The notes beneath the pieces are model-generated. The model ran no database searches, was not told the DNA's origin, and was given only the letters and a program-made list of their open reading frames with translations. Position numbers and translations under genes: made by a program. From the sequence record PV231353.1: 64,000 nucleotides of DNA; one strand, given 5' to 3'. Shown here one piece after another: positions 6,964 to 62,510 of this stretch. Position 1 is the first letter of the stretch. The number at the start of each line of letters is the position of its first letter.

Positions 6964-7038
6964 GAAAAGGGCCTCCGGCGTTGTCGTCGAAGGCCCTTCT
7001 AGCGAGTCGGTGTCAGGCTGTCAACACATGTCAGCCAA
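6964..7038 (-). promoter_or_regulatory. promoter-leader cassette with dyad and U-tract
   Basis: TTGGC-N6-GTG-TTGACA(7019-7024)-N17-TAGAAG-GGCCTTCG-ACGACAACGC-CGGAGGCCC-TTTTC-ATG. Confidence 0.85.
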
Positions 7039-10134: not shown

Positions 10135-11369
<1,235 letters not shown>

Positions 11370-13898: not shown

Positions 13899-13965
13899 GG
13901 GGTCTCCTTCGTTGTCGTCGGGCGTGACTTCTAGTCAGGTTTCGTAGGGCTGTCAACACAATCGG
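13899..13965 (-). promoter_or_regulatory. promoter-leader cassette
   Basis: GTG-TTGACA(13951-13956)-N17-TAGAAG ... ACGACAACG-AAGGAG. Confidence 0.85.
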
Positions 13966-14221: not shown

Positions 14222-15642
14222 TAGATCAGGGCTCCTTGGCTGAGATCGACCGGCGTGTAGACGGCGCGGGTGATCGTGGTCTCCGGCTCGCCCGAACGCT
14301 TGTTGACGCCGTGGCGCTTGATCGTGGCGCGGATGGCGTAGCGCTTGCCGGCCTCGGGACGGTTCTTGCCGGTGTGGAAGTTCACCACCGCCGAGCCGTC
14401 GTCGCAGCGGATGGCCACGATGCAGGTCGTCTCGCCGAAGTCGTTGGTGTAGAGGGAGGTCCGGACGACCTCGCCCACGAAATCCAGGCGCTGGCCCTCG
14501 GCGGCGTCGAGGTGCTTGGCGGCCGGGCGCTGGGGAGCGTCGGCCTTCTTGCGGGCCTCTTCCTCGCGCTCCAGGGTGCGGCCGACCGACAGGCCGACAG
14601 CGGCGACGATCACACCCATGCGCTTGACCAGGACAAAGTCCTCCTGAGCGAGCACCATCTTGATGTTCTCGTGAAACGGATTGCCGGGCTTCAGCGAGCG
14701 AATGTAGGCGGTGAAGCCCTCGCGGTCGAACTCCGGCTCGAAGTCCTTGTAGGAGTCGATGATCTCCTGATTGCGCTTGTGCTCGTAGTCCGACAGGCCG
14801 TAGCCCCGGTTGCCGAACATCAGCAGACCGACGTGCTTGCGCGATTCTTCCTTGCTGTAGCCGCCGAACCGGCGGGCCACGCGGTAGGAGGTGCGCAGGA
14901 GTTCGCCCAGGTCGACGTACTCCTCGCCCTTGCGCCAGCCGCCCGGATCGCCCTTGAAGTTGTTCAGGTCATCCCAGAACGACAGCATCCGGACCGGGTC
15001 GGCGCCCAGGTAGGTCTTCAGGCACGAGGCCCCGATCATCTTGATCCCGTCGGCGGTCTCGCAGACGAAGGTATGCTTGCGCCGCTGGGCGACGCCGCAG
15101 TGGGCGCACTCGCCGGCGTGTACACGCATGGCTTCCACGACGTCGTTGGCGGTCTTGTCGACCAGCTTGAGGTAGTGGCCCGTCTTTTCGGCGGCCTCGT
15201 AGATGCCCAGCACGCGGCCCTTCTCGCCGACCATCGGCGGGACCGACAGGGTGATCTCGACGCGGCGGATCACCATGGCGTCCTCGCTCATATAGGGCGA
15301 GGGGAAGTCGACCACCTTGCGCTCCAGGACCGTCAGGGTCTGGCCAGCGTGGGCGGCGCGCTTTTGCAGCCGGCCCAGCAGGCGCATGAAGCGCTCCTCG
15401 ACGGCGAACCCCATCTTGAAGGTCAGGGTGGCTTGGCCCTCGCGCACGCCTTCCTGGGCGGCCCACATGGCGGCGCGGTGGGCTTCACGCTCCTTGTCGT
15501 CCTCGAAGATCGAGGCGCCCTTGGCGGTCACGACCTCGACGCCGTCGACCATCACGCTGGCCTGATCGGCGACCGTCTGCGGACGCTCGCCGTAGGTTTC
15601 CAGCATGTAGTCCTGGTAGCTGCCTTCGAACTCGCCAAACAT
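14221..15642 (-). CDS. large hypothetical protein with Cys/His cluster and possible C-terminal OB-fold
   Basis: CAHC...RKHTFVC...IGASCL; beta-rich C-terminus; own promoter. Confidence 0.8.
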   Translation of the reverse strand: MFGEFEGSYQDYMLETYGERPQTVADQASVMVDGVEVVTAKGASIFEDDKEREAHRAAMWAAQEGVREGQATLTFKMGFAVEERFMRLLGRLQKRAAHAGQTLTVLERKVVDFPSPYMSEDAMVIRRVEITLSVPPMVGEKGRVLGIYEAAEKTGHYLKLVDKTANDVVEAMRVHAGECAHCGVAQRRKHTFVCETADGIKMIGASCLKTYLGADPVRMLSFWDDLNNFKGDPGGWRKGEEYVDLGELLRTSYRVARRFGGYSKEESRKHVGLLMFGNRGYGLSDYEHKRNQEIIDSYKDFEPEFDREGFTAYIRSLKPGNPFHENIKMVLAQEDFVLVKRMGVIVAAVGLSVGRTLEREEEARKKADAPQRPAAKHLDAAEGQRLDFVGEVVRTSLYTNDFGETTCIVAIRCDDGSAVVNFHTGKNRPEAGKRYAIRATIKRHGVNKRSGEPETTITRAVYTPVDLSQGALI

Positions 15643-15714
15643 GTGCGGCTCCTCTCGCTGTCGTGAGGGAGCTTGTACGGGGCCACGGAGAGGCTGTCAA
15701 CACTCTAACGCCAA
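15643..15714 (-). promoter_or_regulatory. promoter-leader cassette
   Basis: TTGGC-N6-GTG-TTGACA(15695-15700)-N17-TACAAG-CTCCCTC-ACGACAGC-GAGAGGAG. Confidence 0.85.
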
Positions 15715-18582: not shown

Positions 18583-18941
18583 TGACCCGACACCTTCGCC
18601 AGTTGCTTTTCCAGTTCGGCGCGCAGTTCGGCGTCGCTCAGGCCCAGGCGTTCCTTCATGAAGGCCACCGCCTCGGCGGCGGTCTCGAAAGAGTGGGTCT
18701 CGGCATCGGTGCTGTCGCGCAGGCCGAGGATTTCGACCACGCCCCAGATCGTCGCCCAGGCGACGGCGATCAAGGCCGCCACCGTGATGGCGAAGCTGAA
18801 GTTGAACTGGCGTGCGCCACTCAGTTCCATCGCCTCGGCCGCCGTCCAGGCTACCGCGACCATGCTCACCGAGGCGAGATGGAGCAGGGCGGCCCTGCGG
18901 GTGTAGGTCGGGCGGACGGTCAGGGTCATCTTGTCTTGCAT
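18579..18941 (-). CDS. membrane protein
   Basis: Start MQDKMTL behind promoter cassette; two hydrophobic helices. Confidence 0.7.
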   Translation of the reverse strand: MQDKMTLTVRPTYTRRAALLHLASVSMVAVAWTAAEAMELSGARQFNFSFAITVAALIAVAWATIWGVVEILGLRDSTDAETHSFETAAEAVAFMKERLGLSDAELRAELEKQLAKVSGQ

Positions 18942-19015
18942 GAGGGTCTCCTCTGCGGTTGTCGTCGCCCGCCTCTTAGGACAAGGCCTCGGCCTTGTCA
19001 ACACATTCAAGCCAA
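18942..19015 (-). promoter_or_regulatory. promoter-leader cassette
   Basis: TTGGC-N6-GTG-TTGACA(18996-19001)-N17-TAAGAG ... ACGACAACC ... GAGGAG. Confidence 0.85.
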
Positions 19016-20140
19016 CGTGACGCCGAGCGTCGCGGCCATCTTCTGGAGCGCCGCGCGCTGGGTCTTGATCTGCTCGTCGAACTTATCGAAGGCGGTCAGG
19101 ACGTCGGTCTCCAGCTTGCCGAGCGCGTCCCACTGCTTCTTCAGTTCGGCGCCCGCCAGTTCCGCCGCCTCGTTGCGCTCCGGTCCGTAGACGCGCTCGC
19201 GCATCTCGGCGACCCAGGCCCAGGGAAGACCCAGGTCCTCGGCGACCTTCTTGTCGGTCCAGGCCCCGGTATAGCGCTGCTGGATCGTGTTGTAGTGGAC
19301 GTCGAGGGCCTCGATGATCCGGCGGTTCTCGGCCGGTGTCGCCGTGCGCGGCGGCGTGGCGGTGGTCGGCGGGGTGGCGATGGCGGCTGCGGGCACGGGA
19401 GCGATCTCCGGAATGGGGGAAGGGACAGGAGCGTCGGGGGCAAGCTTGCCCTGACGGATCAGGCGGGTGCGGGCGGCGTTCTTCTGCCGCTGGGAGCGTT
19501 CCTCGGGGGTCATCGTCTCCCAGTAGCGGCGGGAAGCCTCGCCCTGCTTGGCGGCGGTCTCAGCCTTCTTGGCGGCGGCGCGGGCGCGGCGGGTCTCATG
19601 ACCCTTGGCGGTGGCGGCCGAGCGCTGCTCGGGCGTCATGGAGGCCTGGACGCGCCTTAGGCGATCGCCGTCCCCGCGCCCCGGCTTGGTCTTGAGACCG
19701 CTCTTGACCATCGCCGCTTCCACGAGGGCGGAGCCGACGGCGGTGGGGGCGTTGGCGGGGCTGGGCTTGGCTTCCACGATGGCTTCCTCTGGAATGATTT
19801 CGAACTTCGCCAGGGCGTTCGAGACGGTGTAGACGGCCGCGTCGAGCAGGAGACCGTGCTGGTTCTCGGGCGGCTGGGACGCGGCCTTGGCCAGCCCATG
19901 GCAGGCAGGACAGACGTCCTTGTTGCGTGAGCCTCCGACCGACCAGCCCCGTTTGCGGAACATCTTGGCGGCGAATTCCGACGGGATGTGGGGTGAGCGG
20001 GTGGTGATGGGGATGGCGTCCTCGGCCGGGCATTTGCGGCAGGTGATGACGACATGGTTCTGGCGCTTGGACGGATCACCGTTCAGGGATCGCATCTCGA
20101 CCCGGAAGGAGTCGCGCGTCGCGAGTTTGGTGGTGCTCAT
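19007..20140 (-). CDS. hypothetical protein with N-terminal Zn-finger-like motif and C-terminal HTH-like segment
   Basis: CRKC...CPACH; two MTPE(Q/E)RS repeats; WTDKKVAEDLGLPWAWV. Confidence 0.75.
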   Translation of the reverse strand: MSTTKLATRDSFRVEMRSLNGDPSKRQNHVVITCRKCPAEDAIPITTRSPHIPSEFAAKMFRKRGWSVGGSRNKDVCPACHGLAKAASQPPENQHGLLLDAAVYTVSNALAKFEIIPEEAIVEAKPSPANAPTAVGSALVEAAMVKSGLKTKPGRGDGDRLRRVQASMTPEQRSAATAKGHETRRARAAAKKAETAAKQGEASRRYWETMTPEERSQRQKNAARTRLIRQGKLAPDAPVPSPIPEIAPVPAAAIATPPTTATPPRTATPAENRRIIEALDVHYNTIQQRYTGAWTDKKVAEDLGLPWAWVAEMRERVYGPERNEAAELAGAELKKQWDALGKLETDVLTAFDKFDEQIKTQRAALQKMAATLGVTLA

Positions 20141-21772: not shown

Positions 21773-22787
21773 GGGCGGCCTCCTCGCCTTCTTCCTCGGC
21801 CGGCGCCAGGGTCGAGCCCGAGTATTCCTGGAGGTGATCGACCGCCTTCTGGGCCAGCGACGCGGCGGTGAAGATGAAGCGCTTGTCGCCCTTCAGGACC
21901 TTCAGCCACGAGGCGACGTAGGAGGCGTGATCCTCGCGGACCTCCGGGGTCAGGCCCAGCACCGCGCAGAGGAAGGCCGAGCCGAGTTCGGCGACCAGTT
22001 CCTCGGCGGCGTAGGCCTCGTCCCCGAAGCGCTTGCCGAACTCGCGGTTCAGGCGGTTCTCGCGACCGGTCCAGTGGACGAACTCGTGACCGAGGGTGGC
22101 GTAGTAGCTCTCCTCGTCGCGGAAGTCGTCGAACTGGGGCATCTGGATGAAGTCCAGGTGCGGCGAGAAGAAGGCCCGGTGCCCGCCGTGGCGCACCTCG
22201 GCGCCCGTGGCGGCGAAGAACTTCTCGACCGCCGCGTTACGCTCCAGGACCCGCTTGGCTTCCTCGGCGGGCGTCGCCGGGGCCGGAGCGGGCTTCTGGT
22301 AGAAGCGCTCGGGCAGGCCGTCGATCTGCTCGACGTTGAACACCAGATAGGACTTCAGGAACGGGATCATCCGCTCGACGTCCTTGCCGTTCGAGTCCTT
22401 CTCGGTCTTCTTGAACTTGGAGGCGTAGACGATCAGTTCGGATTTCTCGCCCTTGCGGACCTGACCGCCCAGGCCCCTGGCTTGGTTGTAGGTCATCCAG
22501 GTCGGGTTGGTGTAGCCGCGCTCCTGGGCGGCGGCCCACAGGAGGACCACGTTGATCCCGGTGTATCGCTGGCCCGTCACGCGGCGCGGATAGATCGCCA
22601 TGCCAGCCGAGGCGCCGCCGGGAGCCGACCACGGCTTCAACCAGGGACGCACGCCGGCGTCGAGCGCGGCGATGATCTTGTCGGTGATCTTGGCATACAA
22701 GTCGACCTTGACGGTCTCCGTCGAAGCTTTGCCGCTCTCCTTGGTGGAGCGCTTGGCCGGCTTCTTCTTGGCGGTGGTCTTGGTCAT
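21759..22787 (-). CDS. ardC: ArdC-family antirestriction / ssDNA-binding protein
   Basis: PW.KPW, YTGIN, WMTY.QA..LGGQVRKGEK, VFNVEQIDG, YYATL.HE..HWTG, Y..EELVAE. Confidence 0.9.
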   Translation of the reverse strand: MTKTTAKKKPAKRSTKESGKASTETVKVDLYAKITDKIIAALDAGVRPWLKPWSAPGGASAGMAIYPRRVTGQRYTGINVVLLWAAAQERGYTNPTWMTYNQARGLGGQVRKGEKSELIVYASKFKKTEKDSNGKDVERMIPFLKSYLVFNVEQIDGLPERFYQKPAPAPATPAEEAKRVLERNAAVEKFFAATGAEVRHGGHRAFFSPHLDFIQMPQFDDFRDEESYYATLGHEFVHWTGRENRLNREFGKRFGDEAYAAEELVAELGSAFLCAVLGLTPEVREDHASYVASWLKVLKGDKRFIFTAASLAQKAVDHLQEYSGSTLAPAEEEGEEAAHEAA

Positions 22788-22857
22788 CAGGGCCTCCTCG
22801 TTGTCGTCGAGGGGGTTCTAGCCGGCGACCGCGACCTTGTCAACACTCTCGCGCCAG
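22788..22857 (-). promoter_or_regulatory. promoter-leader cassette
   Basis: TGGCGCGAGAGTG-TTGACA(22838-22843)-N17-TAGAAC-CCCCTCG-ACGACAA-CGAGGAGG. Confidence 0.9.
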
Positions 22858-28652: not shown

Positions 28653-28939
28653 GTGCGCGGCTCGCGCTTGAAGCGGCCGTTCTCGTCGTAGCGGTCCGGG
28701 TTGGCGCCGGGGGCGTGGAAGCCCGCCATCGAGCCGATCTCCATGGCCGCGCGCTGCGCCGGCGTGACGCCCATGCGCTGGTTCATGGCGGTGACGGCGG
28801 CCTCGCCCTGGACCCCGTAGTCGGTCGCGTAGTAGCCGGTCTCATCCTTCTTCAGGATGACCGTCTCGCCCGTCTCGATGTTGATCGAGTAGCAGAGGTC
28901 GGGCAGGGCCGCGAGATTGATCTGGCGTTGGGTCAGCAT
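28649..28939 (-). CDS. conserved hypothetical protein
   Basis: GVT.AQ.AAM..GSM.GF..PGA.P..Y motif; behind cassette. Confidence 0.8.
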   Translation of the reverse strand: MLTQRQINLAALPDLCYSINIETGETVILKKDETGYYATDYGVQGEAAVTAMNQRMGVTPAQRAAMEIGSMAGFHAPGANPDRYDENGRFKREPRT

Positions 28940-29012
28940 GGAGGCCTCCTTGTTGTCGTCGAGGATGGCTTCTAGCCGGCCCAGGTCAGGTTGTCAACAC
29001 TCGACAGCCAAG
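28940..29012 (-). promoter_or_regulatory. promoter-leader cassette
   Basis: TTGGC-N6-GTG-TTGACA(28992-28997)-N17-TAGAAG ... ACGACAAC-AAGGAGG. Confidence 0.9.
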
Positions 29013-31369: not shown

Positions 31370-31624
31370 AGGTGATCCTGTACGGGAGCCCGCCGACGCA
31401 GATTTTCCCGCGTCGGCCGTCGGCGGTGGTGAAGCGGAAGCCCTGGCGGCTCTTGGTGCCGGCGCAGGACCACCATGCGCGGTGGAAGCTGACGACCTCG
31501 ACGCCGGTGTCGCGCTCGACCAGATGTCGAGCATGACGCCCCTCCCAGGTGTAGGCCCAGACCCCGATGGCGAAGAAGACCAGAGTCAGGGAGCCATAGA
31601 CGGCCCCTTGACATAGTCCTCCAT
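31356..31624 (-). CDS. membrane-anchored small protein (frameshift at about 31605)
   Basis: One extra G restores MEDYVKGAVYGSLTLVFFAIGVWAY...GRD*. Confidence 0.6.
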
Positions 31625-32001
31625 CAGGCCGCCACGAGCCCGGTGATCACGTCGGTGACGATGCGGCGCTTCTCGGCCGGCATGCCCGCCAGCGCCAGGA
31701 TCGTCTTGGCGCCGATCTCGGCGACGGCGGTCTCGACGTCGGCCCGGCCGTCGGTCAGGAACGCCGGATCGTCGACCGGCGGATAGAAGTGCCCGATGTC
31801 CTTCTTCAGGAACTGGGCCGCCTCATAGAGCTTCGAGGACGAGATGCGGTTGTGCCCGCGCTCGTATTTCTGGACCTGCTGGAAGGTCACGCCGATCGCC
31901 TCGGCGAGTTGGCCTTGCGAGAAGCCGGCCGTCTTGCGGGTGTCGCGCAGCTTGCGTCCCACATAGACGTCGACGGGGTGCGGGGTCTTGTCGTCAGCCA
32001 T
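31624..32001 (-). CDS. XRE-family HTH regulator (PhrR/PraR type; candidate homolog of phiCbK Tgrl)
   Basis: HPVDVYVG.KLR..R...G.SQ.QLAEAIGVTFQQVQKYERG.NRIS. Confidence 0.9.
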   Translation of the reverse strand: MADDKTPHPVDVYVGRKLRDTRKTAGFSQGQLAEAIGVTFQQVQKYERGHNRISSSKLYEAAQFLKKDIGHFYPPVDDPAFLTDGRADVETAVAEIGAKTILALAGMPAEKRRIVTDVITGLVAA

Positions 32002-35941: not shown

Positions 35942-36183
35942 GGCTCGACCTTCCGGACAGTGTAGGAGAATTCGTCGTGGACGCGACCGTCGAAACTAGC
36001 CTCGTAGCCGGGGCCGAGTTCGGCCAGGATGCGCGCCTCGATCTCGGCGAAGTCGATTTTCGCCATCGCCTGTTCGGCCGCCCGCATCTGCTGGAGGAAG
36101 CCGTCCTTGATCTGGCGCCCCGCCTCGGTGCGGATCGGGATGTTCTGGATCGGCGGCTCGGATTTCGACAGACGCTCGCCCAT
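35938..36183 (-). CDS. hypothetical protein
   Basis: Start MGERLSK coupled to the gcrA stop. Confidence 0.65.
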   Translation of the reverse strand: MGERLSKSEPPIQNIPIRTEAGRQIKDGFLQQMRAAEQAMAKIDFAEIEARILAELGPGYEASFDGRVHDEFSYTVRKVEP

Positions 36184-36731
36184 CAGGCCCTCCGGCGATA
36201 GACCCGCACCGGGCGGGTGGGGAGGCGTTTCTCGGGCGGCTTGTAGGCGACCAGGGCATGGCTGATGCAGTAGACGCCCGCCTCGGCGCGGCACCCGCAA
36301 TGGCCAAAGTCCGGCGAGTTCGGGTCGCCATAGGGCCAGCGGCACATTCCGCGCTTGAGTTCGGCCGTCGCGAACAGCCGCGCCGGGCGCGGCGGGATGA
36401 CCGCCGTTCCTTCGGGGACCAGGGCGAGCTTGGGCTTGGCCGGCGGAGCGGGCTTTTCGACCTTCTTGGGCTTGCGCGCCGTGGCCTTCTTGACCTTGCG
36501 GACCTGGATGCCCAGGCCGCGCGTCTTCTTGTGGCGGGCGGTCGGAGGCGGAACCTTCTCGCCCAGTTCGCCGGCGGCCTTCAGTCGGTCGGCCTTGCCG
36601 CAGACGGCGCTCTTGGTGCGCGGCACGCTCAGGCGCTGACCGATCTCCTTGGTCCCGACCGGCTCCGCCCAGAGCTTCTTGAGCAGGGCGATGTCCTCGT
36701 CCGGCCAGTCGGAATTCCGCTTCTTCACCAC
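36183..36731 (-). CDS. gcrA: GcrA cell-cycle regulator homolog
   Basis: N-terminal W..E.I..LKKLW.E....EIG..L...TKSAV.GK..RL; C-terminal CRWPYGDP..PDF..CG....YC..H...AY.P. Confidence 0.9.
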   Translation of the reverse strand: MVKKRNSDWPDEDIALLKKLWAEPVGTKEIGQRLSVPRTKSAVCGKADRLKAAGELGEKVPPPTARHKKTRGLGIQVRKVKKATARKPKKVEKPAPPAKPKLALVPEGTAVIPPRPARLFATAELKRGMCRWPYGDPNSPDFGHCGCRAEAGVYCISHALVAYKPPEKRLPTRPVRVYRRRA

Positions 36732-38984: not shown

Positions 38985-39239
38985 ATGCTGAGCAAGGACG
39001 AGATCACCTTCGCGGGCCTGATCAAGGCCATGGAGGACGCCCGGCGCATCGCCAAGGCGGCGGGCGATCTCGTCAGCACGGCCGAGATCGACGGCTGGTT
39101 CAAGACGCACGCGCCGATCATTCGCGAGGTGCGAGACAAGGTCGAGGCCGACGAGTTCGACGCTGGCGCGAGAGTGTTGACAGCCACTGAGGAAGCGGCT
39201 AAAGACACTCTCGACGACAGCGAAAGGAGCCTGCCTTGA
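38985..39239 (+). CDS. hypothetical protein
   Basis: 84 aa; reads through the next promoter. Confidence 0.65.
   Translation: MLSKDEITFAGLIKAMEDARRIAKAAGDLVSTAEIDGWFKTHAPIIREVRDKVEADEFDAGARVLTATEEAAKDTLDDSERSLP
39163..39235 (+). promoter_or_regulatory. promoter-leader cassette
   Basis: TGGCGCGAGAGTG-TTGACA(39177-39182)-N17-TAAAGA ... ACGACAGCG-AAAGGAG. Confidence 0.85.
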
Positions 39240-42286: not shown

Positions 42287-42358
42287 CTGGCGCGAAAGTG
42301 TTGACAGCCTGAAGGGACTCCTCTACACCCACGCTCGATGACAACGAGAGGAGTTCCC
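42287..42358 (+). promoter_or_regulatory. promoter-leader cassette
   Basis: TGGC-N6-GTG-TTGACA(42301-42306)-N17-TACACC ... CTCG-ATGACAA-CGAG-AGGAG. Confidence 0.8.
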
Positions 42359-44116
42359 ATGGCCGAGACCATGACCCTGAGTTTCCGGATCGAAGGCGCC
42401 GCCCTGGTGGAGCGGGCGCGCGATCGCGTCATCGAAGGTAACTGGGAGCACGGCCTGCGCATCCTGGTCGAGGGCCTGCACGGCATGTCCTACGAACTCG
42501 CGATCGACATCCTGCTCGGCAAGCACACCCTGGGCGGCTGGTCCTCGGACCCCGAAGGCGTCTATCTCACCGACCAGGACCCGGAGGACGAGACTTTCAA
42601 GCGTTACAAGGAAACCCTCGACTACCAGTTCGCCGGCGTCTTCAAGCTGGAGGATGGCCGGATCATGCGTCCCTACGCCGTGGTCGACAGCTTCTCCAAG
42701 ATCGACTTCGACTCCAGGGTCCGCTTCCTGCGGCTGGCCCAGGGCTCTGACCCGGTGTTCTCGCGCCCCAAGCGCTATCACGACACCCGCGCCGAGATCA
42801 ACGGCGAGGAGATCGACTGGGCCTATCGCGCCCTGCACTACGCCGACGAGCCGACCCAGGACATCGTCCGTCTGGTCCGTATGGAGGGCTTCCATCCCAC
42901 GATCCGGGCGGCGGTCCTGTTCAAGGAAGTCCGCGACTATCCCAAGCTCCTGCTTCCGAAGGTCGAGACCGACGCCCAGAAGGCCGTCGATGTGGCGATC
43001 AAGGCCCAGCGCGGCCTCTCCAAGCGCGGGCACGTCTACGAGTATGGCGCTGGTCAGGACTTCGACAAGGAGCACTACAAGACCACCATGGGGATCGATC
43101 AGGTCCCCACCGCCTGGACCGTGCGCAATCCGAAGTACGTCGATCCCGACGCCAAGCTCGTCAAGGACACCCTGGCCGAGATCGACGCCCGCAAGGTCGC
43201 GCCGGCCTCCGATTACGCCGGCGCCATGAACCGTCTGATCAAGGACGAGGTGGACGGCGGCATGGACATCAGCACGGCCGTCGCCATGACCCAGGCCAAG
43301 ATGGCGCTGCTGGGCGGCATGGCCGAGGACCCCGAACAGCGCCTGCGGGCGATCAACGACGCCTACGCCGCCAAGTTCGAGAAGGCCGAGGGCCGCAGCG
43401 TCGAGGAGTACCGCAAGGCCATCATCACCCAGGCTGGCGATGACTTCTTCGATCTCGCGTACACGGATGTGGACGGCAAGGAGGTCGTCCTGAAGGTCCC
43501 GACCGCGCCGTTCGAGCAATGGGCTCTGTGGCGCACCGCCGGCGCCCATCTGGCCAAGCCCTGGAAGCGGGTGACCTACACCGGCTTCAAGACCTTCGGC
43601 GATGATCCCTACCACACCGACTGGGTGCTGGGCGCGGGGCTCAACCCCGAGGACTGGCCGGTCATCGAGGCCGACAATCCGCCGCTCCACAAGGCCGCCT
43701 GGGACAAGCGCTTCCGGGTCGCCGAGGAGAAGCTGGGCGGCAACATGCGCGTCCTGCTCGGCAAGGGCTTCGTGACCGGCAAGATCGTGATGCTCAAGCC
43801 GGGCGAGGCCCTGTCACCGGGCGAGATCGGTGTGATCCGCAACGCCGGCCCCGACTACGTCCAGGCCGCCCAGAGCGCGATCGAGCACAACACCGCCTTG
43901 ATCTGCGAGAACGGCGGCAGCGTCGCCCACCTCGTGGTCGAGTACCTGGACAAGCCCCTGCGCCTGACCCGGATCGAGAACGCGCGCAAGATTTTCAAGG
44001 ACGGCATGACCGTCTACCTCGACTTTGACAAGTCGACGCGAGAGATCGCCAAGGGCGGCCTGGGGCCGAGCCCTGCCGATCTTGGCCTCGACACGGAATG
44101 GGAGATTTTCGAATGA
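42359..44116 (+). CDS. large protein with C-terminal PEP-utilising enzyme mobile (phospho-His) domain
   Basis: G.VTGKIV ... GEIGVI....PDY ... ALICENGGSVAH ... FKDGMTVYLD. Confidence 0.75.
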   Translation: MAETMTLSFRIEGAALVERARDRVIEGNWEHGLRILVEGLHGMSYELAIDILLGKHTLGGWSSDPEGVYLTDQDPEDETFKRYKETLDYQFAGVFKLEDGRIMRPYAVVDSFSKIDFDSRVRFLRLAQGSDPVFSRPKRYHDTRAEINGEEIDWAYRALHYADEPTQDIVRLVRMEGFHPTIRAAVLFKEVRDYPKLLLPKVETDAQKAVDVAIKAQRGLSKRGHVYEYGAGQDFDKEHYKTTMGIDQVPTAWTVRNPKYVDPDAKLVKDTLAEIDARKVAPASDYAGAMNRLIKDEVDGGMDISTAVAMTQAKMALLGGMAEDPEQRLRAINDAYAAKFEKAEGRSVEEYRKAIITQAGDDFFDLAYTDVDGKEVVLKVPTAPFEQWALWRTAGAHLAKPWKRVTYTGFKTFGDDPYHTDWVLGAGLNPEDWPVIEADNPPLHKAAWDKRFRVAEEKLGGNMRVLLGKGFVTGKIVMLKPGEALSPGEIGVIRNAGPDYVQAAQSAIEHNTALICENGGSVAHLVVEYLDKPLRLTRIENARKIFKDGMTVYLDFDKSTREIAKGGLGPSPADLGLDTEWEIFE

Positions 44117-45696: not shown

Positions 45697-45929
45697 TCGA
45701 GCACGTCTGGCGCCGTGACCCGCGCGGTCCCGCCTATGGCTTCCAGCGCCTGGACCTGGACGAGGCGCTGAAGATCGTCGCGGTCGAGAAGCAGGACTTC
45801 CTCCTCCATCTGGTCGCGGTCCTGCACGAGAACAACCTCCTGCGCGACGATGACGTCATGGAACTGCTCGGCAAGGGCTGGGCGCTCGACCCTACGATCT
45901 CCACCACATCGACGAAGATTAGGCGTTGA
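45693..45929 (+). CDS. hypothetical protein
   Basis: 78 aa; stop lies inside the next -35 box. Confidence 0.65.
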   Translation: MIEHVWRRDPRGPAYGFQRLDLDEALKIVAVEKQDFLLHLVAVLHENNLLRDDDVMELLGKGWALDPTISTTSTKIRR

Positions 45930-45982
45930 CAACACTCTCGCGCCAACATAGAACCGCCCTCGACGACAACGAGGAGGCTTCC
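45926..45982 (+). promoter_or_regulatory. promoter-leader cassette, flipped-element type
   Basis: TTGACA-ACACTCTCGCGCCAACA-TAGAAC ... CCTCG-ACGACAA-CGAGGAGG. Confidence 0.9.
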
Positions 45983-46366
45983 ATGAAGCTCGCGACCCAA
46001 GACCGCTCCGACCCGCGCTTGAACGCGCCCTACCGCCTCGCCAAGGCGGTGTTCTACTACGGCGGCCCGCACGAGTACCCGATCCACCTGAACGACTGGT
46101 GGAACGAGGTGACGCCGGCCGACGTGGAGGATCGCATCTCCGATCTCTGCCGCGAGCTTTCCAAGCTGTCGGGCCAGACCCTGGCGCCGGCGACCTTCTA
46201 CGAGCGGATGAAGCTGGGCTTCGTCGACCTCCCGGAGGTCAAGGACGAGGACTTCGCCGCCCTGTCGGAAGCGACCCGCAACAACCTGCTGGCCATGCAG
46301 GACCGCTTCTCGGTCCACGGCAGCGGCTTCATGCTCTACTGGAACATCGTGAAAGAGGAGGCCTGA
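45983..46366 (+). CDS. hypothetical protein
   Basis: Start MKLATQDR behind SD. Confidence 0.8.
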   Translation: MKLATQDRSDPRLNAPYRLAKAVFYYGGPHEYPIHLNDWWNEVTPADVEDRISDLCRELSKLSGQTLAPATFYERMKLGFVDLPEVKDEDFAALSEATRNNLLAMQDRFSVHGSGFMLYWNIVKEEA

Positions 46367-53953: not shown

Positions 53954-54645
53954 TTTTTGTTTTTGGAGACATACACGGCCGCCTCGACCTCCTGGAGAAG
54001 GCGCGACACGAAATCCGTGTACGCGGCGACTGCACGCAGATGATCTTCCTCGGGGACTATGTCGATCGCGGACCCGATAGCAAGGGCGTCGTCGAGGCCG
54101 TGATGGCGCTCCAGGCCCAGGGCGAGATCGCCCTGATGGGCAACCACGAGGAAATGATGCTGACCGCCTGTCAGATCAAGTCCTACAACGCCATGTCCAA
54201 GCTCTGGGTGTCGAACGGCGGCAAGCAGACCCTGAAGTCCTACGGGGCCGGCGACAATGCCTGGAACGCCAAATGGGACCTGATCCCCCAGGAGCACGTC
54301 GACTGGCTGGCGCGGCTCAAACCGATCCACGAGACGCCGGGGCGGGTGTTCGTCCACGCGGGCCTCGCGCCGGGGGTGGCGATCAAGATGCAGGAGGAGG
54401 AACACCTTCTCTGGATCAGGGACAAGTTCCTCAACGCCTCGGCCGACCAGTTCGAAAAGCACGTCGTCCACGGCCACACCCACACCCATGCGCGCAAGAA
54501 GATCGAAGAGCCCGAGCTTCTCGCGCATCGGACCAACCTCGACACCGGGGCCTTCTATACCGGCGTCCTGGCCGTCGGGGTGTTCGATCCGGACGGCTAT
54601 GGCGGACCCGAGGAGGTGCTGTTGATCCGCGAGGACGACGCATGA
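53950..54645 (+). CDS. Ser/Thr protein phosphatase (metallophosphoesterase, PPP family)
   Basis: GDIHG, GDYVDRG, GNHE, FVHAG, HGHT, LDTG. Confidence 0.9.
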   Translation: MIFVFGDIHGRLDLLEKARHEIRVRGDCTQMIFLGDYVDRGPDSKGVVEAVMALQAQGEIALMGNHEEMMLTACQIKSYNAMSKLWVSNGGKQTLKSYGAGDNAWNAKWDLIPQEHVDWLARLKPIHETPGRVFVHAGLAPGVAIKMQEEEHLLWIRDKFLNASADQFEKHVVHGHTHTHARKKIEEPELLAHRTNLDTGAFYTGVLAVGVFDPDGYGGPEEVLLIREDDA

Positions 54646-55226
54646 TCCCAGACTTCGTCCAGAAGGCGCGCAAGCTCCTGGGCCTCTACGGCGACAAGCC
54701 GAAGGTCAAGCCGGTCGATCCCGCCGCGCCGCTGGGCGGGACGATCGTCGGCCAGGGCTTCGGCTTCCCAGTCCCGCAGGTCCCTTCCGGGAGCAGCCAC
54801 GGCGCCTTGGGCGGCCCTGGCGGCGGATCGATCCACACCGGCTCGGGACATGGCGTCATCATGATGGGGGCGGGCGGTGGCGGCTCAGCCCAAATCCTGG
54901 TCTATAACGGCGCGACGACGACGTGGGCGCCAATGCCCGAGGCGGTGGTCAAGACGGTCGAGAAGCCCAAGACGCGGCCCGGCCTGACGGCGGGAGAGGA
55001 CGAGGTCATCACGACCATGGTTCGCTATGGCGATGTCGAACTGGTTCTGGAGCGCGATCGCAAGTTCGCTTTCGTGCGGCACAAGATGGAGCTTGCCTAT
55101 CCCCGCGTCTCGGGCCGTATGCTCAAGTCCTTGATCAAGAAGGGCTATCTGAAAGCTATCGAGCATGACGAGATGGGCGGCCCGCAGGTGGCGGTAGTCG
55201 TGGCGGGGAAGGTCGCGGTCTGCTGA
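54642..55226 (+). CDS. hypothetical protein with Gly-rich N-terminal half
   Basis: 194 aa, ATGA overlap. Confidence 0.7.
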   Translation: MIPDFVQKARKLLGLYGDKPKVKPVDPAAPLGGTIVGQGFGFPVPQVPSGSSHGALGGPGGGSIHTGSGHGVIMMGAGGGGSAQILVYNGATTTWAPMPEAVVKTVEKPKTRPGLTAGEDEVITTMVRYGDVELVLERDRKFAFVRHKMELAYPRVSGRMLKSLIKKGYLKAIEHDEMGGPQVAVVVAGKVAVC

Positions 55227-55232
55227 ATTTTG

Positions 55233-55303
55233 TTGGCGCGAGAACGTTGACAGCCTCGGCGTGGTGTCATAAAAGCCTCCTCGACGACAACGAGGAGGCC
55301 CCC
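55233..55303 (+). promoter_or_regulatory. promoter-leader cassette with perfect dyad
   Basis: TTGGC-N6-ACG-TTGACA(55247-55252)-N17-TAAAAG; GCCTCCTCG-ACGACAA-CGAGGAGGC (55275-55299). Confidence 0.9.
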
Positions 55304-55723
55304 ATGGCTTACGCAATTCCGGACCTGAGCACGTTCACGTTCCACGACCCCAAGGTCGAACGGTTCGCCAAGGCGATGATCTCGACGATCGAGACCGCCC
55401 AGACCATGCTCACGGCCTTCGCCAACGATCTCGCCGACAATCCTCTTCAGGCGTTCGAGCATAGCTACGGCGCCAAGATGGCCGCCGCCCACAGGGACGT
55501 CGCCAAGGGGCTGCTCAACGAAGTCCTCGACGCGCTGCTGCACGGTCAGGACAAGACCTGGGCCTACATCGGCCAGGACCTGCGCGAGCGGCTGATGTAC
55601 CGCGTGATCTACGCGGCCTCGAACCCGCCGCGCTCGACCAACGCCGAGAGCAACGACATGGCCCGCTTCGTCCTGCGCGCCGAGGCCGACATGCTCGACC
55701 GCATGACCAAGAGCCGCTTCTGA
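55304..55723 (+). CDS. hypothetical protein
   Basis: Start MAYAIPD behind SD. Confidence 0.8.
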   Translation: MAYAIPDLSTFTFHDPKVERFAKAMISTIETAQTMLTAFANDLADNPLQAFEHSYGAKMAAAHRDVAKGLLNEVLDALLHGQDKTWAYIGQDLRERLMYRVIYAASNPPRSTNAESNDMARFVLRAEADMLDRMTKSRF

Positions 55724-56037
55724 TGCGGATCGTCGACTTCGCGACGTTCGTGACGCTTCCGGCTGGGACCCTCTACCAGGAGATCGACCAGTACGGGAGC
55801 CCCATCAGCGCCCTGGCGATCCGCCACGACGTGCTGTTTGACGGCGATCGCCCGTTCGACTTCATCTACGAGGAAATCCTCTACCAGACGGCCGACGGCT
55901 TCCTGGGCGACCCGCCGAAGCTGGCCGAGTTGGGAACCAAGCGCTGGGGGCTCTTCGATGACGAGACCCTGTTCATCGTCTACGAGACGCAGGACCGCGC
56001 CCGGCTGGCCAAGATCATTCTGGGAGGCGCCGCATGA
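55723..56037 (+). CDS. hypothetical protein
   Basis: TGATG coupling. Confidence 0.7.
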   Translation: MRIVDFATFVTLPAGTLYQEIDQYGSPISALAIRHDVLFDGDRPFDFIYEEILYQTADGFLGDPPKLAELGTKRWGLFDDETLFIVYETQDRARLAKIILGGAA

Positions 56038-56255
56038 AGCCGCAGACCCAGAGGACCTTCATCCTGTCCGGCGTGGGCTTCTTCCTCGGCTTCCTGCTGG
56101 TGTTTGGCTTCATGAGCGCCACGCAGGCCTCCTACAACCGAGGCTATCGAGACGCCAAGGCCGACACGCGCCGGGACGAGCCCGCATGCTTCGTCACCGA
56201 GCGCTGCTACCTCGGCCAGGACGCCGACGGGCGGTGGTTCATCGAGCCAAAATAG
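56034..56255 (+). CDS. single-pass membrane protein
   Basis: Hydrophobic N-terminal helix. Confidence 0.7.
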   Translation: MKPQTQRTFILSGVGFFLGFLLVFGFMSATQASYNRGYRDAKADTRRDEPACFVTERCYLGQDADGRWFIEPK

Positions 56256-56333
56256 TTGGCGTTCAAGTGTTGCCAAAGCTGATCTGATCAGCTAGAACCC
56301 TCGCCGACGACAACGCAAGAGGAGCCCCGAGCC
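56256..56333 (+). promoter_or_regulatory. promoter-leader cassette with palindromic spacer
   Basis: TTGGC-N6-GTG-TTGCCA(56270-56275); AGCTGATC-T-GATCAGCT; TAGAAC ... ACGACAACG ... GAGGAG. Confidence 0.8.
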
Positions 56334-56714
56334 GTGGAACACCTGACCCGCGCCATCGACCCCCGCATCGGCTACCTGAACTCGGGCGTCTACTACGCCT
56401 TCGTCGACGGCTACGACAAGCCCGAGACGCGCGGCACGCTCGAAGAGGTCGAGATCGCCCTGGGCCTGCGCGCCGCGAAGCCGGCTCCGACCAAGCGCAT
56501 CGTCGCCGCCCAGCCGGCCGTCAGGACCTACTCGGTCCACATGCGGTTCGAATATCCGGGCTGGAGCTACGTCGACGGCATCACCTACGACGGTATGCTC
56601 GGCCGCACGAAGGCCGAAGCGATCCGCAACGCCCGCGCCGAGGCCTTTGCCGACGGTCACCTCGGCGTCGGCCAGGGTCGCGTGTGGTTCAAGGCCACGG
56701 AAGAGGACGCCTAG
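56334..56714 (+). CDS. hypothetical protein
   Basis: GTG start behind cassette. Confidence 0.75.
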   Translation: MEHLTRAIDPRIGYLNSGVYYAFVDGYDKPETRGTLEEVEIALGLRAAKPAPTKRIVAAQPAVRTYSVHMRFEYPGWSYVDGITYDGMLGRTKAEAIRNARAEAFADGHLGVGQGRVWFKATEEDA

Positions 56715-56948
56715 ATGAGCCGCATCCGCGTCATTGACCGCGATGGGTTCATGCAGGGCTGGGTCGACGCCCGCGTCGGCCTTCCCACCTATTCCGGTCC
56801 CGTCACCCGCTGGACCGAGAAAGGCTCGTTCTGGACCACCGACTCGGACGGCGAGGAGCGCCTGTGGAAGGCCGGCAACCACCAGCCCTGCGTCTACAGG
56901 AGCAAGCTCCGCAAGAGCGACATCATCCACGAGCGACGGGAGGGCTGA
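56715..56948 (+). CDS. hypothetical protein
   Basis: 77 aa, adjacent. Confidence 0.7.
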   Translation: MSRIRVIDRDGFMQGWVDARVGLPTYSGPVTRWTEKGSFWTTDSDGEERLWKAGNHQPCVYRSKLRKSDIIHERREG

Positions 56949-56949
56949 C

Positions 56950-57267
56950 ATGGGCCTGCTGAGCATCTATCTGACGGGCGCGGCGCTCACCGGCGTGGCG
57001 ACGAGCGTCTACCTTTTCAAGTTCCGGGCGCCCGCGACGCATGAGACCTACACCACCACCTGGGGCTATGTCGAAACCGACAACGTCGCCGAGACCGGCA
57101 ACCACCTGGGGGCGATCCTCCTGATGGCGCTCTTCTGGTTCGTCATGGTCCCGATGGCGATCGTCATGTTGCTCTGGCATCTCCTGGTCCGTACCGTCGA
57201 CAAGGCTTGGCGACGGCGCACGGCGCGCCGCGAGAAGACGCACGTCGGCACCCATCGCTATCTGTGA
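56950..57267 (+). CDS. membrane protein
   Basis: Start MGLLSIYL; two hydrophobic segments. Confidence 0.7.
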   Translation: MGLLSIYLTGAALTGVATSVYLFKFRAPATHETYTTTWGYVETDNVAETGNHLGAILLMALFWFVMVPMAIVMLLWHLLVRTVDKAWRRRTARREKTHVGTHRYL

Positions 57268-57283
57268 CCGCCGCCAGCCCCGC

Positions 57284-57330
57284 TGGCTTCAGTGTGTTGA
57301 CGGCGCGTCGATCGCCCGCTAAGAAGGGCT
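57284..57330 (+). promoter_or_regulatory. promoter (no ACGACAAC leader)
   Basis: TGGC-N6-GTG-TTGACG(57297-57302)-N17-TAAGAA. Confidence 0.8.
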
Positions 57331-57350
57331 GACGGTCACGCTCTGGCTGC

Positions 57351-59414
57351 ATGAATTTTCAATCCGAAAGGGGCCTTAAGTCCATGGATTTCCACGTCTT
57401 TAAGACGGCTGTCGCCAAGCAGTGGGCCGCGATGACCAAGGGTGACGCGACCTTGTTCCGCGTCGACGTCGACAAGGACCTCCTGTGGTCGACCTACCTG
57501 AAGGCGTTCCCGGCTGGGACCGATCCGATCTTCCGCGAGCGCTCCGAGCACGACTGCTCGTGCTGCCGCAACTTCATCCGAAACGCCGGCGACGCCGTGG
57601 CGGTGGTCAACGGCCAGATCGTCACGATCTGGGACTGGCCGATCGAGGGCGAGCCGGCCTATCAGCAGGTCTCCCAGACCCTGGCGGCGCTGGTCCGTTC
57701 GCGTCCGGTGCGCGACATCTTCCTGCATGACCAGAACAGAATCGGGACCGACAAGAACGTCGAGACCATGCTGGGCGGCGACGTCACCTGGAACCACTTC
57801 TTCGTCAATGTCCCCTCGCGCTTCGTCAAGAAGGGCAAGGACATCCCGACCGCGCTCCACCTCCCGCGCACGGCGCAGGAGACGCTCCTGCGCGCCGTCA
57901 ACGAGATCACCGACGAGGCGATCGACACGGTGCTGGACCTGATCGCCCAGAACGCGCTCTATCGCGGGGCCGAACACAAGTCGGCGGTGGTGGCGTTCCA
58001 GAAGGCCAAGAAGACCTTCGAGGGCCTGTCGGCCGCCGACAAGGCGCTGAAGGCCTGGGTCAACGTCGCCAGCGGCGAACTCTGGGGCTCGGTCTCGGGC
58101 ATCCGGAGCACGGTGATCGGCTCGCTGCTGGTCGACCTGTCGGCCGATGTCGACCTGGAGGAGGCGGTCAAGAAGTTCGAGGCCAAGGTCGCGCCGTACA
58201 ACTACAAGCGCACGACCGCCCTGGTGACCAAGAAGCAGATCGAGAACGCCAAGAAGACGATCTCCGACCTGGGCCTGACCTCGGCTCTGGAGCGGCGCTA
58301 CGCCGTCCTCAAGGACGTGTCGATCAACGACGTGCTGTTCGCCGACCGCGACGCCAAGTCGGTGATGAACGACGTCTTCGACGATCTGGCGGCCGACGTC
58401 GCCGAGAAGGCCAAGGCCTATGACAAGGTCGAGGAGGTGTCGATCGACAAGTTCCTGGCCGACATCCTCCCGAGGGTGACGAGCGTCGAGGCCCTGGTCG
58501 AGAACCGCCTGACGAGCAACTTCGTCAGCCTGATCGCGCCGGTCGACCCGACCGCTGGCTCCCTCTTCAAGTGGGGGAACAACTTCTCCTGGTCCTACGC
58601 CGGCGAGGTGGCGGACTCGATCAAGGCCCGCGTCAAGGCGGCCGGCGGCAACGTCACCGGCGATCTCTGCTGCCGTCTGGCGTGGTTCAACTACGACGAC
58701 CTGGACTTCCACATGCGGGAGCCGGGTGGCAGCACGATCTACTTCCGCCAGAAGTCCTCGCCCGTCACGGGCGGGCGGCTCGACGTCGACATGAACGCCG
58801 GCGGTGGTCAGACGCGCGAGCCGGTCGAGAACATCTTCTACGGCGACCGCCGGACGATGAAGGAGGGCGTTTACGAACTGATCGTCCATCAGTACAGCAA
58901 GCGCGAGACCCGCGACGTCGGCTTCGAGGTGGAAATCGACTACCTGGGCTCGGTCACCCGCTACGCCTACACGACGGCCGTCCGCCAGGATCAGTCCGTC
59001 ACGGTCGCCAAGTTCAAGTACAGCCACGCCGGCGGCATCGAGTTCATCTCCTCGCTCCCGGCCTCGTCGGCGAGCAAGGACGTCTGGGGCGTGAAGACCG
59101 AGACCTTCCGCAAGGTCAACGTCATCATGCTCTCGCCCAACCACTGGGAAGGCGAGCCGGGCGTGGGGAACAAGCACTGGTTCTTCATGCTGGACGGGGG
59201 CGTCAACGAAGACGGCGCTCGCGGCTTCTACAACGAGTTCCTGAAGGACAGCCTCACGCCCCACCGTCGCGTCTTCGAGATGCTGGGGTCCAAGCTGAAG
59301 CCCGCGCCGGCCGCCGACCAACTCAGCGGCCTGGGCTTCTCCTCGACCAAGCGCGACGAACTCGTCGTGCGCGTCAAGGGGGCCTTCACCCGTACCCTCA
59401 AGATCAAATTCTAA
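57351..59414 (+). CDS. large conserved phage protein with possible YfaP/DUF2135-like domain
   Basis: HDCSCCR.FI; W.N.DDLD.H..EP.G..IYF ... LDVDMNAG ... VENI.Y ... G.Y...V; start may be ATG 57384. Confidence 0.8.
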   Translation: MNFQSERGLKSMDFHVFKTAVAKQWAAMTKGDATLFRVDVDKDLLWSTYLKAFPAGTDPIFRERSEHDCSCCRNFIRNAGDAVAVVNGQIVTIWDWPIEGEPAYQQVSQTLAALVRSRPVRDIFLHDQNRIGTDKNVETMLGGDVTWNHFFVNVPSRFVKKGKDIPTALHLPRTAQETLLRAVNEITDEAIDTVLDLIAQNALYRGAEHKSAVVAFQKAKKTFEGLSAADKALKAWVNVASGELWGSVSGIRSTVIGSLLVDLSADVDLEEAVKKFEAKVAPYNYKRTTALVTKKQIENAKKTISDLGLTSALERRYAVLKDVSINDVLFADRDAKSVMNDVFDDLAADVAEKAKAYDKVEEVSIDKFLADILPRVTSVEALVENRLTSNFVSLIAPVDPTAGSLFKWGNNFSWSYAGEVADSIKARVKAAGGNVTGDLCCRLAWFNYDDLDFHMREPGGSTIYFRQKSSPVTGGRLDVDMNAGGGQTREPVENIFYGDRRTMKEGVYELIVHQYSKRETRDVGFEVEIDYLGSVTRYAYTTAVRQDQSVTVAKFKYSHAGGIEFISSLPASSASKDVWGVKTETFRKVNVIMLSPNHWEGEPGVGNKHWFFMLDGGVNEDGARGFYNEFLKDSLTPHRRVFEMLGSKLKPAPAADQLSGLGFSSTKRDELVVRVKGAFTRTLKIKF

Positions 59415-59876: not shown

Positions 59877-59938
59877 TTGACAACACTCTCGCGCCAACAT
59901 AGAAGGGCCTCCGACGACAACGCCGGAGGCCCTTTTTC
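59877..59938 (+). promoter_or_regulatory. promoter-leader cassette, flipped-element type, dyad plus U-tract
   Basis: TTGACA-ACACTCTCGCGCCAACA-TAGAAG; GGGCCTCCG-ACGACAACGC-CGGAGGCCC-TTTTT. Confidence 0.9.
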
Positions 59939-60169
59939 GTGAAACAGACCGTCATCGAAAAGCTGGAGAAGACCCGCAACAGCATCATCGCGCAGCAGCA
60001 GCGCGGCATGAACTGGGGCACCAAGGCCTGCCTCGAACTGGTTTATCGATACAACGATCTGAAAGCGAAAGCGACCGAGGTCGGTGGTTACAGCAATCCC
60101 GAGTGGAAAGCCTATTGCGAGCGGCATGGATCGTGCGTCACGCATGATGGCTATGACCTGTGGGCCTGA
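59939..60169 (+). CDS. hypothetical protein
   Basis: GTG start behind cassette. Confidence 0.75.
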   Translation: MKQTVIEKLEKTRNSIIAQQQRGMNWGTKACLELVYRYNDLKAKATEVGGYSNPEWKAYCERHGSCVTHDGYDLWA

Positions 60170-62144: not shown

Positions 62145-62443
62145 GCGACCACGACGCCTGCCTGACCAACTGGGTCCTCTGCGACGCGCCCGGCGGCGGG
62201 CTGGTGGTGATCGGCGAAATCATGGCCGACAAGCGCGGGCGCTGGCCGGACGGGCGGCTCATCCACACCTCGCTCCTCCAGGTCAAGGCCGAGGCGGTGG
62301 CGCCGGGCGCGGTGGTCGCCACGCTCAACTCCCGCTACATCCTGGGGCGCAAGGCCGAGGAGATCACCGTCCGGCACTTCGTCGGGGCGATGCTCGCCCG
62401 CGTCGCGATCAGACCGCTTGACAACACTCTCGCGCCAACATAG
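62141..62443 (+). CDS. hypothetical protein
   Basis: G....DKRGRWPDG..IHTS ... TLNSRY.L; reads through the next promoter. Confidence 0.7.
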   Translation: MSDHDACLTNWVLCDAPGGGLVVIGEIMADKRGRWPDGRLIHTSLLQVKAEAVAPGAVVATLNSRYILGRKAEEITVRHFVGAMLARVAIRPLDNTLAPT

Positions 62444-62510
62444 AAGGGTCCTCGACGACAACGGCTGTCCGAAATTTGTAGACAGATTTCGGACATAGAG
62501 GAGCACCCCG
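62418..62510 (+). promoter_or_regulatory. promoter-leader cassette, flipped-element type, with inserted 30-bp palindrome
   Basis: TTGACA-ACACTCTCGCGCCAACA-TAGAAG ... ACGACAACG-GC-TGTCCGAAATTTGT-AG-ACAGATTTCGGACA-TAGAGGAG. Confidence 0.85.

Follow-up and report, generated by a model that had tools for sequence, protein, structure and literature searches.

A repeated host-type promoter module in phiCbK-like Caulobacter phages, a subset of whose copies may hide the Shine-Dalgarno sequence in a hairpin of read-through RNA

Phages T5, T7 (A1-A3) and T4 (early genes) carry repeated, highly conserved strong promoters that are used by the host polymerase, and the early promoters of phage N4 are DNA hairpins read by the virion RNA polymerase. 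In phage T4, genes e, soc, 49 and I-TevI are under translational control exerted by a promoter-in-hairpin arrangement (PMC3014915). There, as at the sites described below, the Shine-Dalgarno (SD) sequence is paired to an upstream segment and the promoter lies within or next to the DNA of the 5' arm; RNA from the internal promoter lacks the 5' arm and is translatable, and read-through RNA is silent, which for the present sites is a prediction.

Work on Caulobacter as a cell-cycle model uses phiCbK as its standard phage. We analyzed the phiCbK-like Caulobacter phage RBC57 (PV231353.1, 208,414 bp; G+C content 66%), bases 1-64000 of which constitute the window, that is, the whole 64,000-nt stretch of DNA under study. 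Over the 4-kb stretch tested (54000-58000), the window sequence is 100% identical to RBC57; phiCbK, Swift, Karma and Magneto are 94-97% identical, and Rogue and BL10 are approximately 78% identical. Genes lie on the minus strand until about 36.9 kb and on the plus strand from there on, and the promoter modules reported here switch along with them at about 37 kb. Two adjacent minus-strand CDSs, 10135-10599 and 10722-11369, are both annotated as RNA 2',3'-PO4:5'-OH ligase (RtcB); since Rogue and BL10 have a single RtcB gene of 1,233 nt, RtcB looks split or interrupted in RBC57.

The focal site spans 55233-55723 and comprises the following features:

55233-55237, plus strand: TTGGC upstream element, about 13 nt before the -35 box, conserved in most RBC57, Rogue and BL10 copies
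55247-55252, plus strand: -35 hexamer TTGACA
55270-55275, plus strand: -10 hexamer TAAAAG (family TAGAAG), after a 17-nt spacer
55275-55283, plus strand: left arm GCCTCCTCG, containing the anti-SD CCTCC, between the -10 box and the inferred start
55284-55290, plus strand: heptamer ACGACAA, the inferred start element and hairpin loop
55291-55299, plus strand: right arm CGAGGAGGC, with the SD GGAGG at 55294-55298
55304-55723, plus strand: downstream gene of 139 aa (hypothetical, no Pfam match), ATG at 55304, first of a short operon

The preliminary description reported a perfect 9-bp dyad, GCCTCCTCG-ACGACAA-CGAGGAGGC, at 55275-55299 with the SD as its right arm, and this is exactly what the site contains. 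The dyad ends 4 nt before the ATG, and segment 55270-55304 folds at -17.5 kcal/mol (z -6.6 vs dinucleotide shuffles). A 23-nt block, CCTCCTCGACGACAACGAGGAGG, is invariant at 55284 in five phages (RBC57, phiCbK, BL57, Rogue and BL10); Rogue and BL10 carry a different spacer at this site, yet CCTCCTCGACGACAACGAGGAGG, including the left arm, is unchanged in them.

The heptamer ACGACAA occurs in 22 exact copies in the window, against 4.28 ± 2.07 expected, and none of 100 shuffles reached 22. Fourteen of these copies, together with four one-off variants (ACGACAG twice, ATGACAA and ACACAAC), belong to one repeated module, whose consensus reads (c)TGGC(g)-N5/8-GTG-TTGACA-N17-TAGAAG in the upstream half and TAGAAG-N5-TCG-ACGACAA-CGA-GGAGG-N4-6-ATG in the downstream half, with 7 or 8 nt between TAGAAG and the heptamer. 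The remaining eight exact heptamers lie outside modules, at places where the local gene strand reads Asp-Asp-Lys. The window holds 18 module copies and the genome approximately 22, nearly all within 1-66 kb; the exceptions are 196264 and a weak copy at 93914 (modules are referred to by heptamer position). All copies are co-directional with the downstream gene, and the modules compared with the annotation (55284, 42338 and 59914) each occupy a gap of 50-90 bp between same-strand genes. The modules head blocks of small, mostly uncharacterised genes. Pfam searches on eight downstream genes gave a tyrosine recombinase at 196285 as the sole match, and there is no shared downstream-gene function that accounts for which modules have hairpins.

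The geometry of the module is that of a sigma-70-type promoter: TTGACA-like and TAnAAn hexamers (consensus TTGACA and TAGAAG) stand 16-18 bp apart upstream of a co-oriented gene, with spacers of 17 nt in 18 copies and 18 nt in four. The Caulobacter sigma-73 consensus is TTGACGS / GCTANAWC, and TTGACA-N17-TAGAAG fits it too. Judged by sequence, the modules are near-consensus promoters of the host sigma-70 type (Caulobacter sigma-73) that form a phage-specific family. In 20 of 22 copies, 7-8 nt separate the heptamer from the -10 box, whereas the distance from heptamer to start codon varies from 11 to 20 nt and reaches 49 nt in one copy; because the fixed distance is that to the -10 box and not that to the start codon, the heptamer is part of the promoter or start site and not of the ribosome-binding site. 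It is present at 15 of the 19 strict promoter-consensus matches in the genome and is found in stem-less copies too, which makes it separable from the hairpin; it goes with the -10 box and not with the SD.

Standard promoter geometry would place the transcription start at the G or A that opens (G)ACGACAA, and the heptamer would accordingly be a start-site and initial transcribed element. The preliminary description had cautioned that the left arm may for this reason not be transcribed, and the caution holds: with the start placed by the TTGACA-N17-TAGAAG geometry, the left arm is predicted to remain outside the transcript. Start-site choice, promoter escape, pausing and provision of a factor binding site are all possible roles of the heptamer. 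A generic promoter and terminator scan, which requires T at position 6 of the -10 box and a loop of at most 8 nt, detected none of the modules because their -10 box lacks T at that position, and missed the stem at 59914 because its loop exceeds 8 nt.

In most modules of RBC57, Rogue and BL10, (c/t)TGGC(g)-N5-GTG stands directly 5' of TTGACA, and this element could be UP-like or an activator site. A sigma-54 reading of TGGC-N8-GTGTTG was rejected, as neither the spacing nor the GC dinucleotide fits. Three modules share one identical 17-nt -35/-10 spacer, ACACTCTCGCGCCAACA (45932-45948, 59883-59899 and 62424-62440). Modules with this spacer have no upstream TGGC/GTG element, and five such copies are present in Rogue and a similar set in BL10; since the spacer is conserved, it may mark a second promoter subclass or contain a regulator site.

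Exact-pattern matches in IMG/VR were confined to the phiCbK-like isolates Karma, Rogue and BL10, and the GenBank phages with the module are all Caulobacter phages of the phiCbK-like subfamily. A search of 185,579 bacterial genomes returned three matches, approximately the chance level estimated for the 21-base pattern. We found no account of the module, or of phiCbK promoters, in the searchable literature, and the module is unmentioned in the 2012 genome paper (PMC3556154) and in the 2023 transcriptome paper.

At least one module-driven block includes a documented early gene, and the promoter class is apparently early: tgrL (gp216), which encodes an XRE-family regulator, is a documented early gene of phiCbK (PMC10688885). 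In RBC57 it corresponds to CDS 31624-32001 (minus strand), downstream of module 33283, and was matched via the sequence of a cloning primer, as this CDS begins with ATGGCTGACGACAAGACC, the same as the phiCbK gp216 primer. Another minus-strand gene, 36183-36731, adjoins the divergent promoter region at 36.9-37.05 kb and is the positional counterpart of the GcrA-like cell-cycle regulator genes Rogue gp204 and BL10 gp220c. Host GcrA is described in PMC4647560 as a sigma-70 cofactor, and the GcrA-like product may therefore act on the module promoters.

Besides the focal site, the window contains the following module features:

42301-42361, plus strand: spacer-type module, left arm GGGACTCCTC at 42314-42323 within the -35/-10 spacer
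42348-42357, plus strand: right arm GAGGAGTTCC of the 42338 module, holding the SD
59877-59941, plus strand: terminator-like module, 59901-59913 paired with 59924-59936, then TTTTT; GTG start at 59939
6961-7024, minus strand: terminator-like module, paralogue of 59914; heptamer at 6981-6987, TTTT before the ATG at 6963
15640-15700, minus strand: module with ACGACAG at 15658-15664 and a bulged 8-bp stem
22785-22843, minus strand: moderate-stem module, CCTCG/CGAGG plus CC/GG; heptamer at 22801-22807
45926-45985, plus strand: weak-stem module of the ACACTCTCGCGCCAACA-spacer subfamily; heptamer at 45963-45969
28937-28997, minus strand: module with the SD predicted occluded in the read-through form; heptamer at 28953-28959
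13912-13918, minus strand: heptamer of a stem-less module
18965, 20915, 27453 and 33283, minus strand: heptamer starts of stem-poor modules
37032, 39214, 47479, 56307 and 62455, plus strand: heptamer starts of stem-poor modules

The other dyads named in the preliminary description all exist, their folds ranging from z -7.1 (59900-59937, -25.8 kcal/mol) to a weak z -1.6 (45952-45982, -8.6 kcal/mol). Between these lie 6964-7001 on the minus strand (-22.9 kcal/mol, z -6.2), 15645-15677 on the minus strand (-13.3 kcal/mol, z -4.2), 42311-42361 (-17.0 kcal/mol, z -3.2) and 22787-22819 on the minus strand (-9.7 kcal/mol, z -2.4); the two copies said to lack a good stem, 13899 and 20897, indeed have none (z +0.3 and +0.7). 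The SD sits in the 3' arm at 59914, the loop at 42338 includes the -10 box and ATGACAA (42338-42344), and the stem at 6987 has one U-G pair that is C-G in BL10. Hairpin loops range from 6 to about 24 nt.

Two of the stem-poor modules have peculiarities of their own. Module 39214 (39177-39239) overlaps the 3' end of CDS 38985-39239, which places this promoter inside coding sequence, and precedes a gene with a TTG start at 39236. The leader of module 62455 is 49 nt long (62462-62510) and contains, before the SD, a perfect 10-bp inverted repeat, TGTCCGAAAT-N10-ATTTCGGACA; this repeat is conserved in Rogue and, in altered form, in BL10, and it could act as an operator or fold as a hairpin in the leader RNA.

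Pairing between the -35-to-heptamer region and the SD region was quantified against shuffles, with 196 gene starts of the same genome as controls. The mean z was -1.3 for modules and -0.03 for controls, and six RBC57 sites (6987, 42338, 55284, 59914, 64931 and 196264) reached p ≤ 0.02, where about 0.4 would be expected. In raw duplex energies, modules and controls differed only in the strong tail (Mann-Whitney p 0.20). SD accessibility was then computed for the read-through form, defined as RNA with 62 nt upstream included: the predicted unpaired probability of the SD was ≤ 0.02 in 7 of 22 modules (32%), compared with 8 of 196 control gene starts (4%; Fisher p 1.5e-4), and the same full occlusion was predicted for 36% of modules in Rogue and 33% in BL10. 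For RNA that starts at the heptamer, the SD accessibility predicted at the seven occluded RBC57 sites is 0.3-0.6. The motif CCTCC was found between the -35 box and the start in 21 of 65 modules, against a genome baseline of 3.6-3.9%; of the same 65 modules, none had it within the first 35 nt of the CDS and one had it upstream of the -35 box. No Rfam family matched at gathering score anywhere in the window. The proposition that the dyads exceed chance is therefore borne out by the six significant sites and by the excess of occluded SDs, and does not extend to the two thirds of modules that have no significant stem: hairpins exceed chance in a subset of modules only.

The arms had also been described as co-varying. 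Across the family this was not confirmed: when 49 distinct copies from three phages were compared in one fixed register, 55.8% of the cells were paired, against 54.6 ± 1.3% in shuffles. Register 0 beats slid registers (29-47% pairing), which indicates that the consensus itself is a dyad, CCTCG-heptamer-CGAGG, and the null result for covariation indicates that most of the pairing is between the conserved blocks CCTCG and CGAGG. What did hold is narrower. Left arms pair better with their own SD region than with the SD regions of other copies (permutation p 0.001, 0.045 and 0.02 in three phages), and this copy-specific matching is real but modest, being confined to some groups. At the 42338 site, compared in seven phages, Swift has GGGAACTCCTC paired with GAGGAGTTCCC, and Rogue, RBC63 and BL10 have GGGGCCTCCTC paired with GAGGAGGCCCC, which amounts to two compensatory pairs; RBC57 and phiCbK have a G-U pair at the changed position, and the spacer outside the arm is scrambled among the relatives. 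Compensatory changes were found only within this one ortholog group. In the 64931 group, the second of the spacer type, GGCCTCCTG...CAGGAGGCC is conserved in three phages amid variable flanks. Only the sense strand gives G-U at the wobble pairs of 6987 and 42338.

The layout recurs in another genus: the promoters of Colossus and CcrPW (Colossusvirus) differ in their spacer and keep the arrangement, with arms CCTCCTCG/CGAGGAGG, CCTCCATG/CATGGAGG or CCTCCT/AGGAGG, and in the 40 kb of Colossus read, CCTCC follows the -10 box directly in 5 of 12 promoters. The Colossus promoter family reads TTGAC(A/G/C)-N10-TTTCTT-TACAAG-N7/8-GACGA(TCAA/AAC) (NC_019406 206510-246545, e.g., locus 18900-18970 and 19978-20036), and has nothing in common with the RBC57 promoters beyond the anti-SD/SD dyad and the start core GACGA. 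Module, geometry, stems, enrichment, conservation and compensatory changes are direct observations in these genomes.

We propose an arrangement like that of T4 gene e, in which a hairpin that hides the SD or terminates transcription would form only in read-through RNA; we give this proposal an even chance of being correct. The module's own transcript would start at the heptamer and have an A/C-rich leader of about 20 nt with its SD free. In about one third of copies, CCTCC and its flanks are complementary to the SD; this segment, which is situated either downstream of the -10 box and short of the start or within the -35/-10 spacer, would belong to the part of the promoter that is absent from this RNA. 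Because the inferred start is downstream of the left arm, as is even the -10 box in two cases, the module's own RNA could not form the hairpin; both arms would be present only in RNA coming from the upstream gene, and the hairpin would form in that RNA alone. What we infer here is the start site, the existence and fate of the read-through RNA, and its effect on translation or termination.

Two outcomes are predicted for such RNA. At 59914 and 6987, a GC-rich stem of 9-13 bp followed by TTTT(T) is intrinsic-terminator-like, and this stem and U-run would probably terminate read-through; at 55284, 42338 and 15664 the stem does not directly precede a U-run. At 55284, 42338, 28959, 64931 and 196264 (the last two outside the window) the read-through hairpin would hide the SD, and the gene would then be translated mainly from its own promoter. 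RNA data from phiCbK infection consist of assembled contigs of 23-47 kb with flat depth and no 5' ends; those from infected cells have no break at 55284 or 56307, a continuity to which DNA carry-over possibly contributes. No convincing plus-strand terminators were found in 44-64 kb. The upstream promoters look to be of the same class, so that the likely benefit would be insulation of tandem units and not timing. Weighing against the proposal, the dyad could largely be inherited with a duplicated promoter-plus-leader cassette, and the benefit of silencing read-through copies has no clear rationale. Several other candidates were rejected: contig breaks near 59903-59922 as 5' ends, since other module copies match there and the breaks look like repeat collapse; translational coupling, since the upstream stops lie 38-53 nt before the left arms, beyond the reach of a terminating ribosome; and RNase III sites, since stems of 9-13 bp were judged too short.

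Set against T4, SD sequestration in the long transcript is predicted here at 7 of 22 modules, and the absence of the 5' arm from the internal RNA follows from geometry with the start placed as above. Unlike the phage late promoters embedded in the T4 hairpins, the promoter embedded here is of host-type consensus and apparently early; the upstream promoters are of the same class by sequence, and a temporal switch like that of T4 is not evident. The layout here also differs in recurring at about 7 of 22 sites of a single module. It resembles intrinsic terminators that overlap the next promoter in that the stems at 59914 and 6987 are GC-rich, 9-13 bp long and followed by four or five T, and the GenBank annotation of the equivalent Colossus stem is a predicted rho-independent terminator. 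It departs from the usual intrinsic terminator in that the next gene's SD forms the 3' arm and the next start site lies in a 10-nt loop, and the hairpins at 55284, 42338 and 64931 have no T-run at all. Many near-identical consensus promoters, conserved beyond the hexamers into the start region, recall the T5, T7 and T4 early sets, from which (G)ACGACAA (GACGA in Colossus) and the upstream TGGC, both specific to the phiCbK-like group, set this family apart. As in N4, inverted repeats with variable stems and a conserved centre are associated with promoters; unlike in N4, these promoters have the canonical -35 and -10 boxes of the host polymerase, loops of 6-24 nt and the SD as one arm.

The read-through hairpin is absent from the preliminary description, which offered two models, and it fits better than either. 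In one, the gene's own mRNA folds and a protein recognizing the ACGACAA loop switches translation. Stable stems and a conserved loop speak for it; with a start at the heptamer, however, at most 1-2 nt of the left arm would be transcribed, in the 42338 and 64931 groups the left arm even precedes the -10 box, loops vary from 6 to about 24 nt and many heptamer copies have no stem, so that we regard this model as very improbable. The other model has the non-template strand of the open complex fold into a DNA hairpin, or the dyad extrude as a cruciform, and so tune the promoter; it draws on the extent of the dyads, from the -10 box to about 16 nt past the inferred start. The open-complex bubble spans roughly -11 to +2. 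The model fails because one or the other arm falls outside this bubble of roughly 13 nt: the right arm, which begins and ends about 8-16 nt past the inferred start, or a left arm located in the spacer. Moreover, the wobble pairs at 6987 and 42338 would be G-T mismatches in DNA and are G-U wobbles in sense RNA, and the pairing partner is always the SD, which has no DNA role; this model appears extremely unlikely.

A rather unlikely alternative, which concerns the heptamer and is compatible with the read-through hairpin, is that the heptamer and its flanking dyad TCG...CGA form a DNA site for a phage or host protein, either a repressor that closes early promoters or a factor loading onto RNA polymerase at the start site, the longer stems being secondary. 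The near-invariance of the heptamer, its tie to the -10 box, its presence at 15 of 19 consensus promoters and the confinement of the module to phiCbK-like isolates (IMG/VR), with only chance-level matches in bacterial genomes, all agree with such a site, and column composition explains the in-register pairing as a conserved dyad would. Such a site is harder to reconcile with the conserved centre, which is asymmetric and orientation-specific, or with arms that vary between copies past 3 bp; it leaves the spacer-located arms and the compensatory changes unexplained, and no candidate protein was identified. It is also quite improbable, in our judgment, that the hairpins have no selected function and reflect GC-rich composition together with the descent of a duplicated promoter-plus-leader cassette whose ancestral dyad is decaying. 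The null family-wide covariation, the paralogy of the 59914 and 6987 stems and the lack of stems in most copies would be expected on this account. Against it, modules have an 8-fold excess of occluded SDs relative to controls, the untranscribed interval is the only place where the anti-SD is found, the spacer-type arms cannot derive from a heptamer-adjacent arm, compensatory changes occur within an otherwise scrambled spacer, and the layout is kept across genera despite different promoter spacers.

A more far-reaching idea, which we put forward as speculation with a small chance of being right, is that the start element (G)ACGACAAC is more than a start site. It may be a pause element, or a site where a phage factor loads and thereby co-regulates the whole regulon, so that together with the hairpins it would define insulated early blocks; or a loop-binding phage protein might later release translation of read-through RNA. 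GACAAC within the start element resembles the Caulobacter -10 consensus TANAWC, and as a pause element (G)ACGACAAC could be sigma-dependent and promoter-proximal.

With the module at hand, approximately 20 probable early transcription units can be mapped in each genome, and Caulobacter gains a promoter-plus-leader that is compact, strong and portable. What appears to be new, as far as the sequences indicate, is a promoter-in-hairpin layout built on a host-type, apparently early promoter and recurring in a promoter family. If the read-through hairpin is real, the device of the T4 late-gene promoter-in-hairpin would have been reused repeatedly, with host-type promoters, in an unrelated phage subfamily, and the hairpins would insulate tandem transcription units rather than time their expression.
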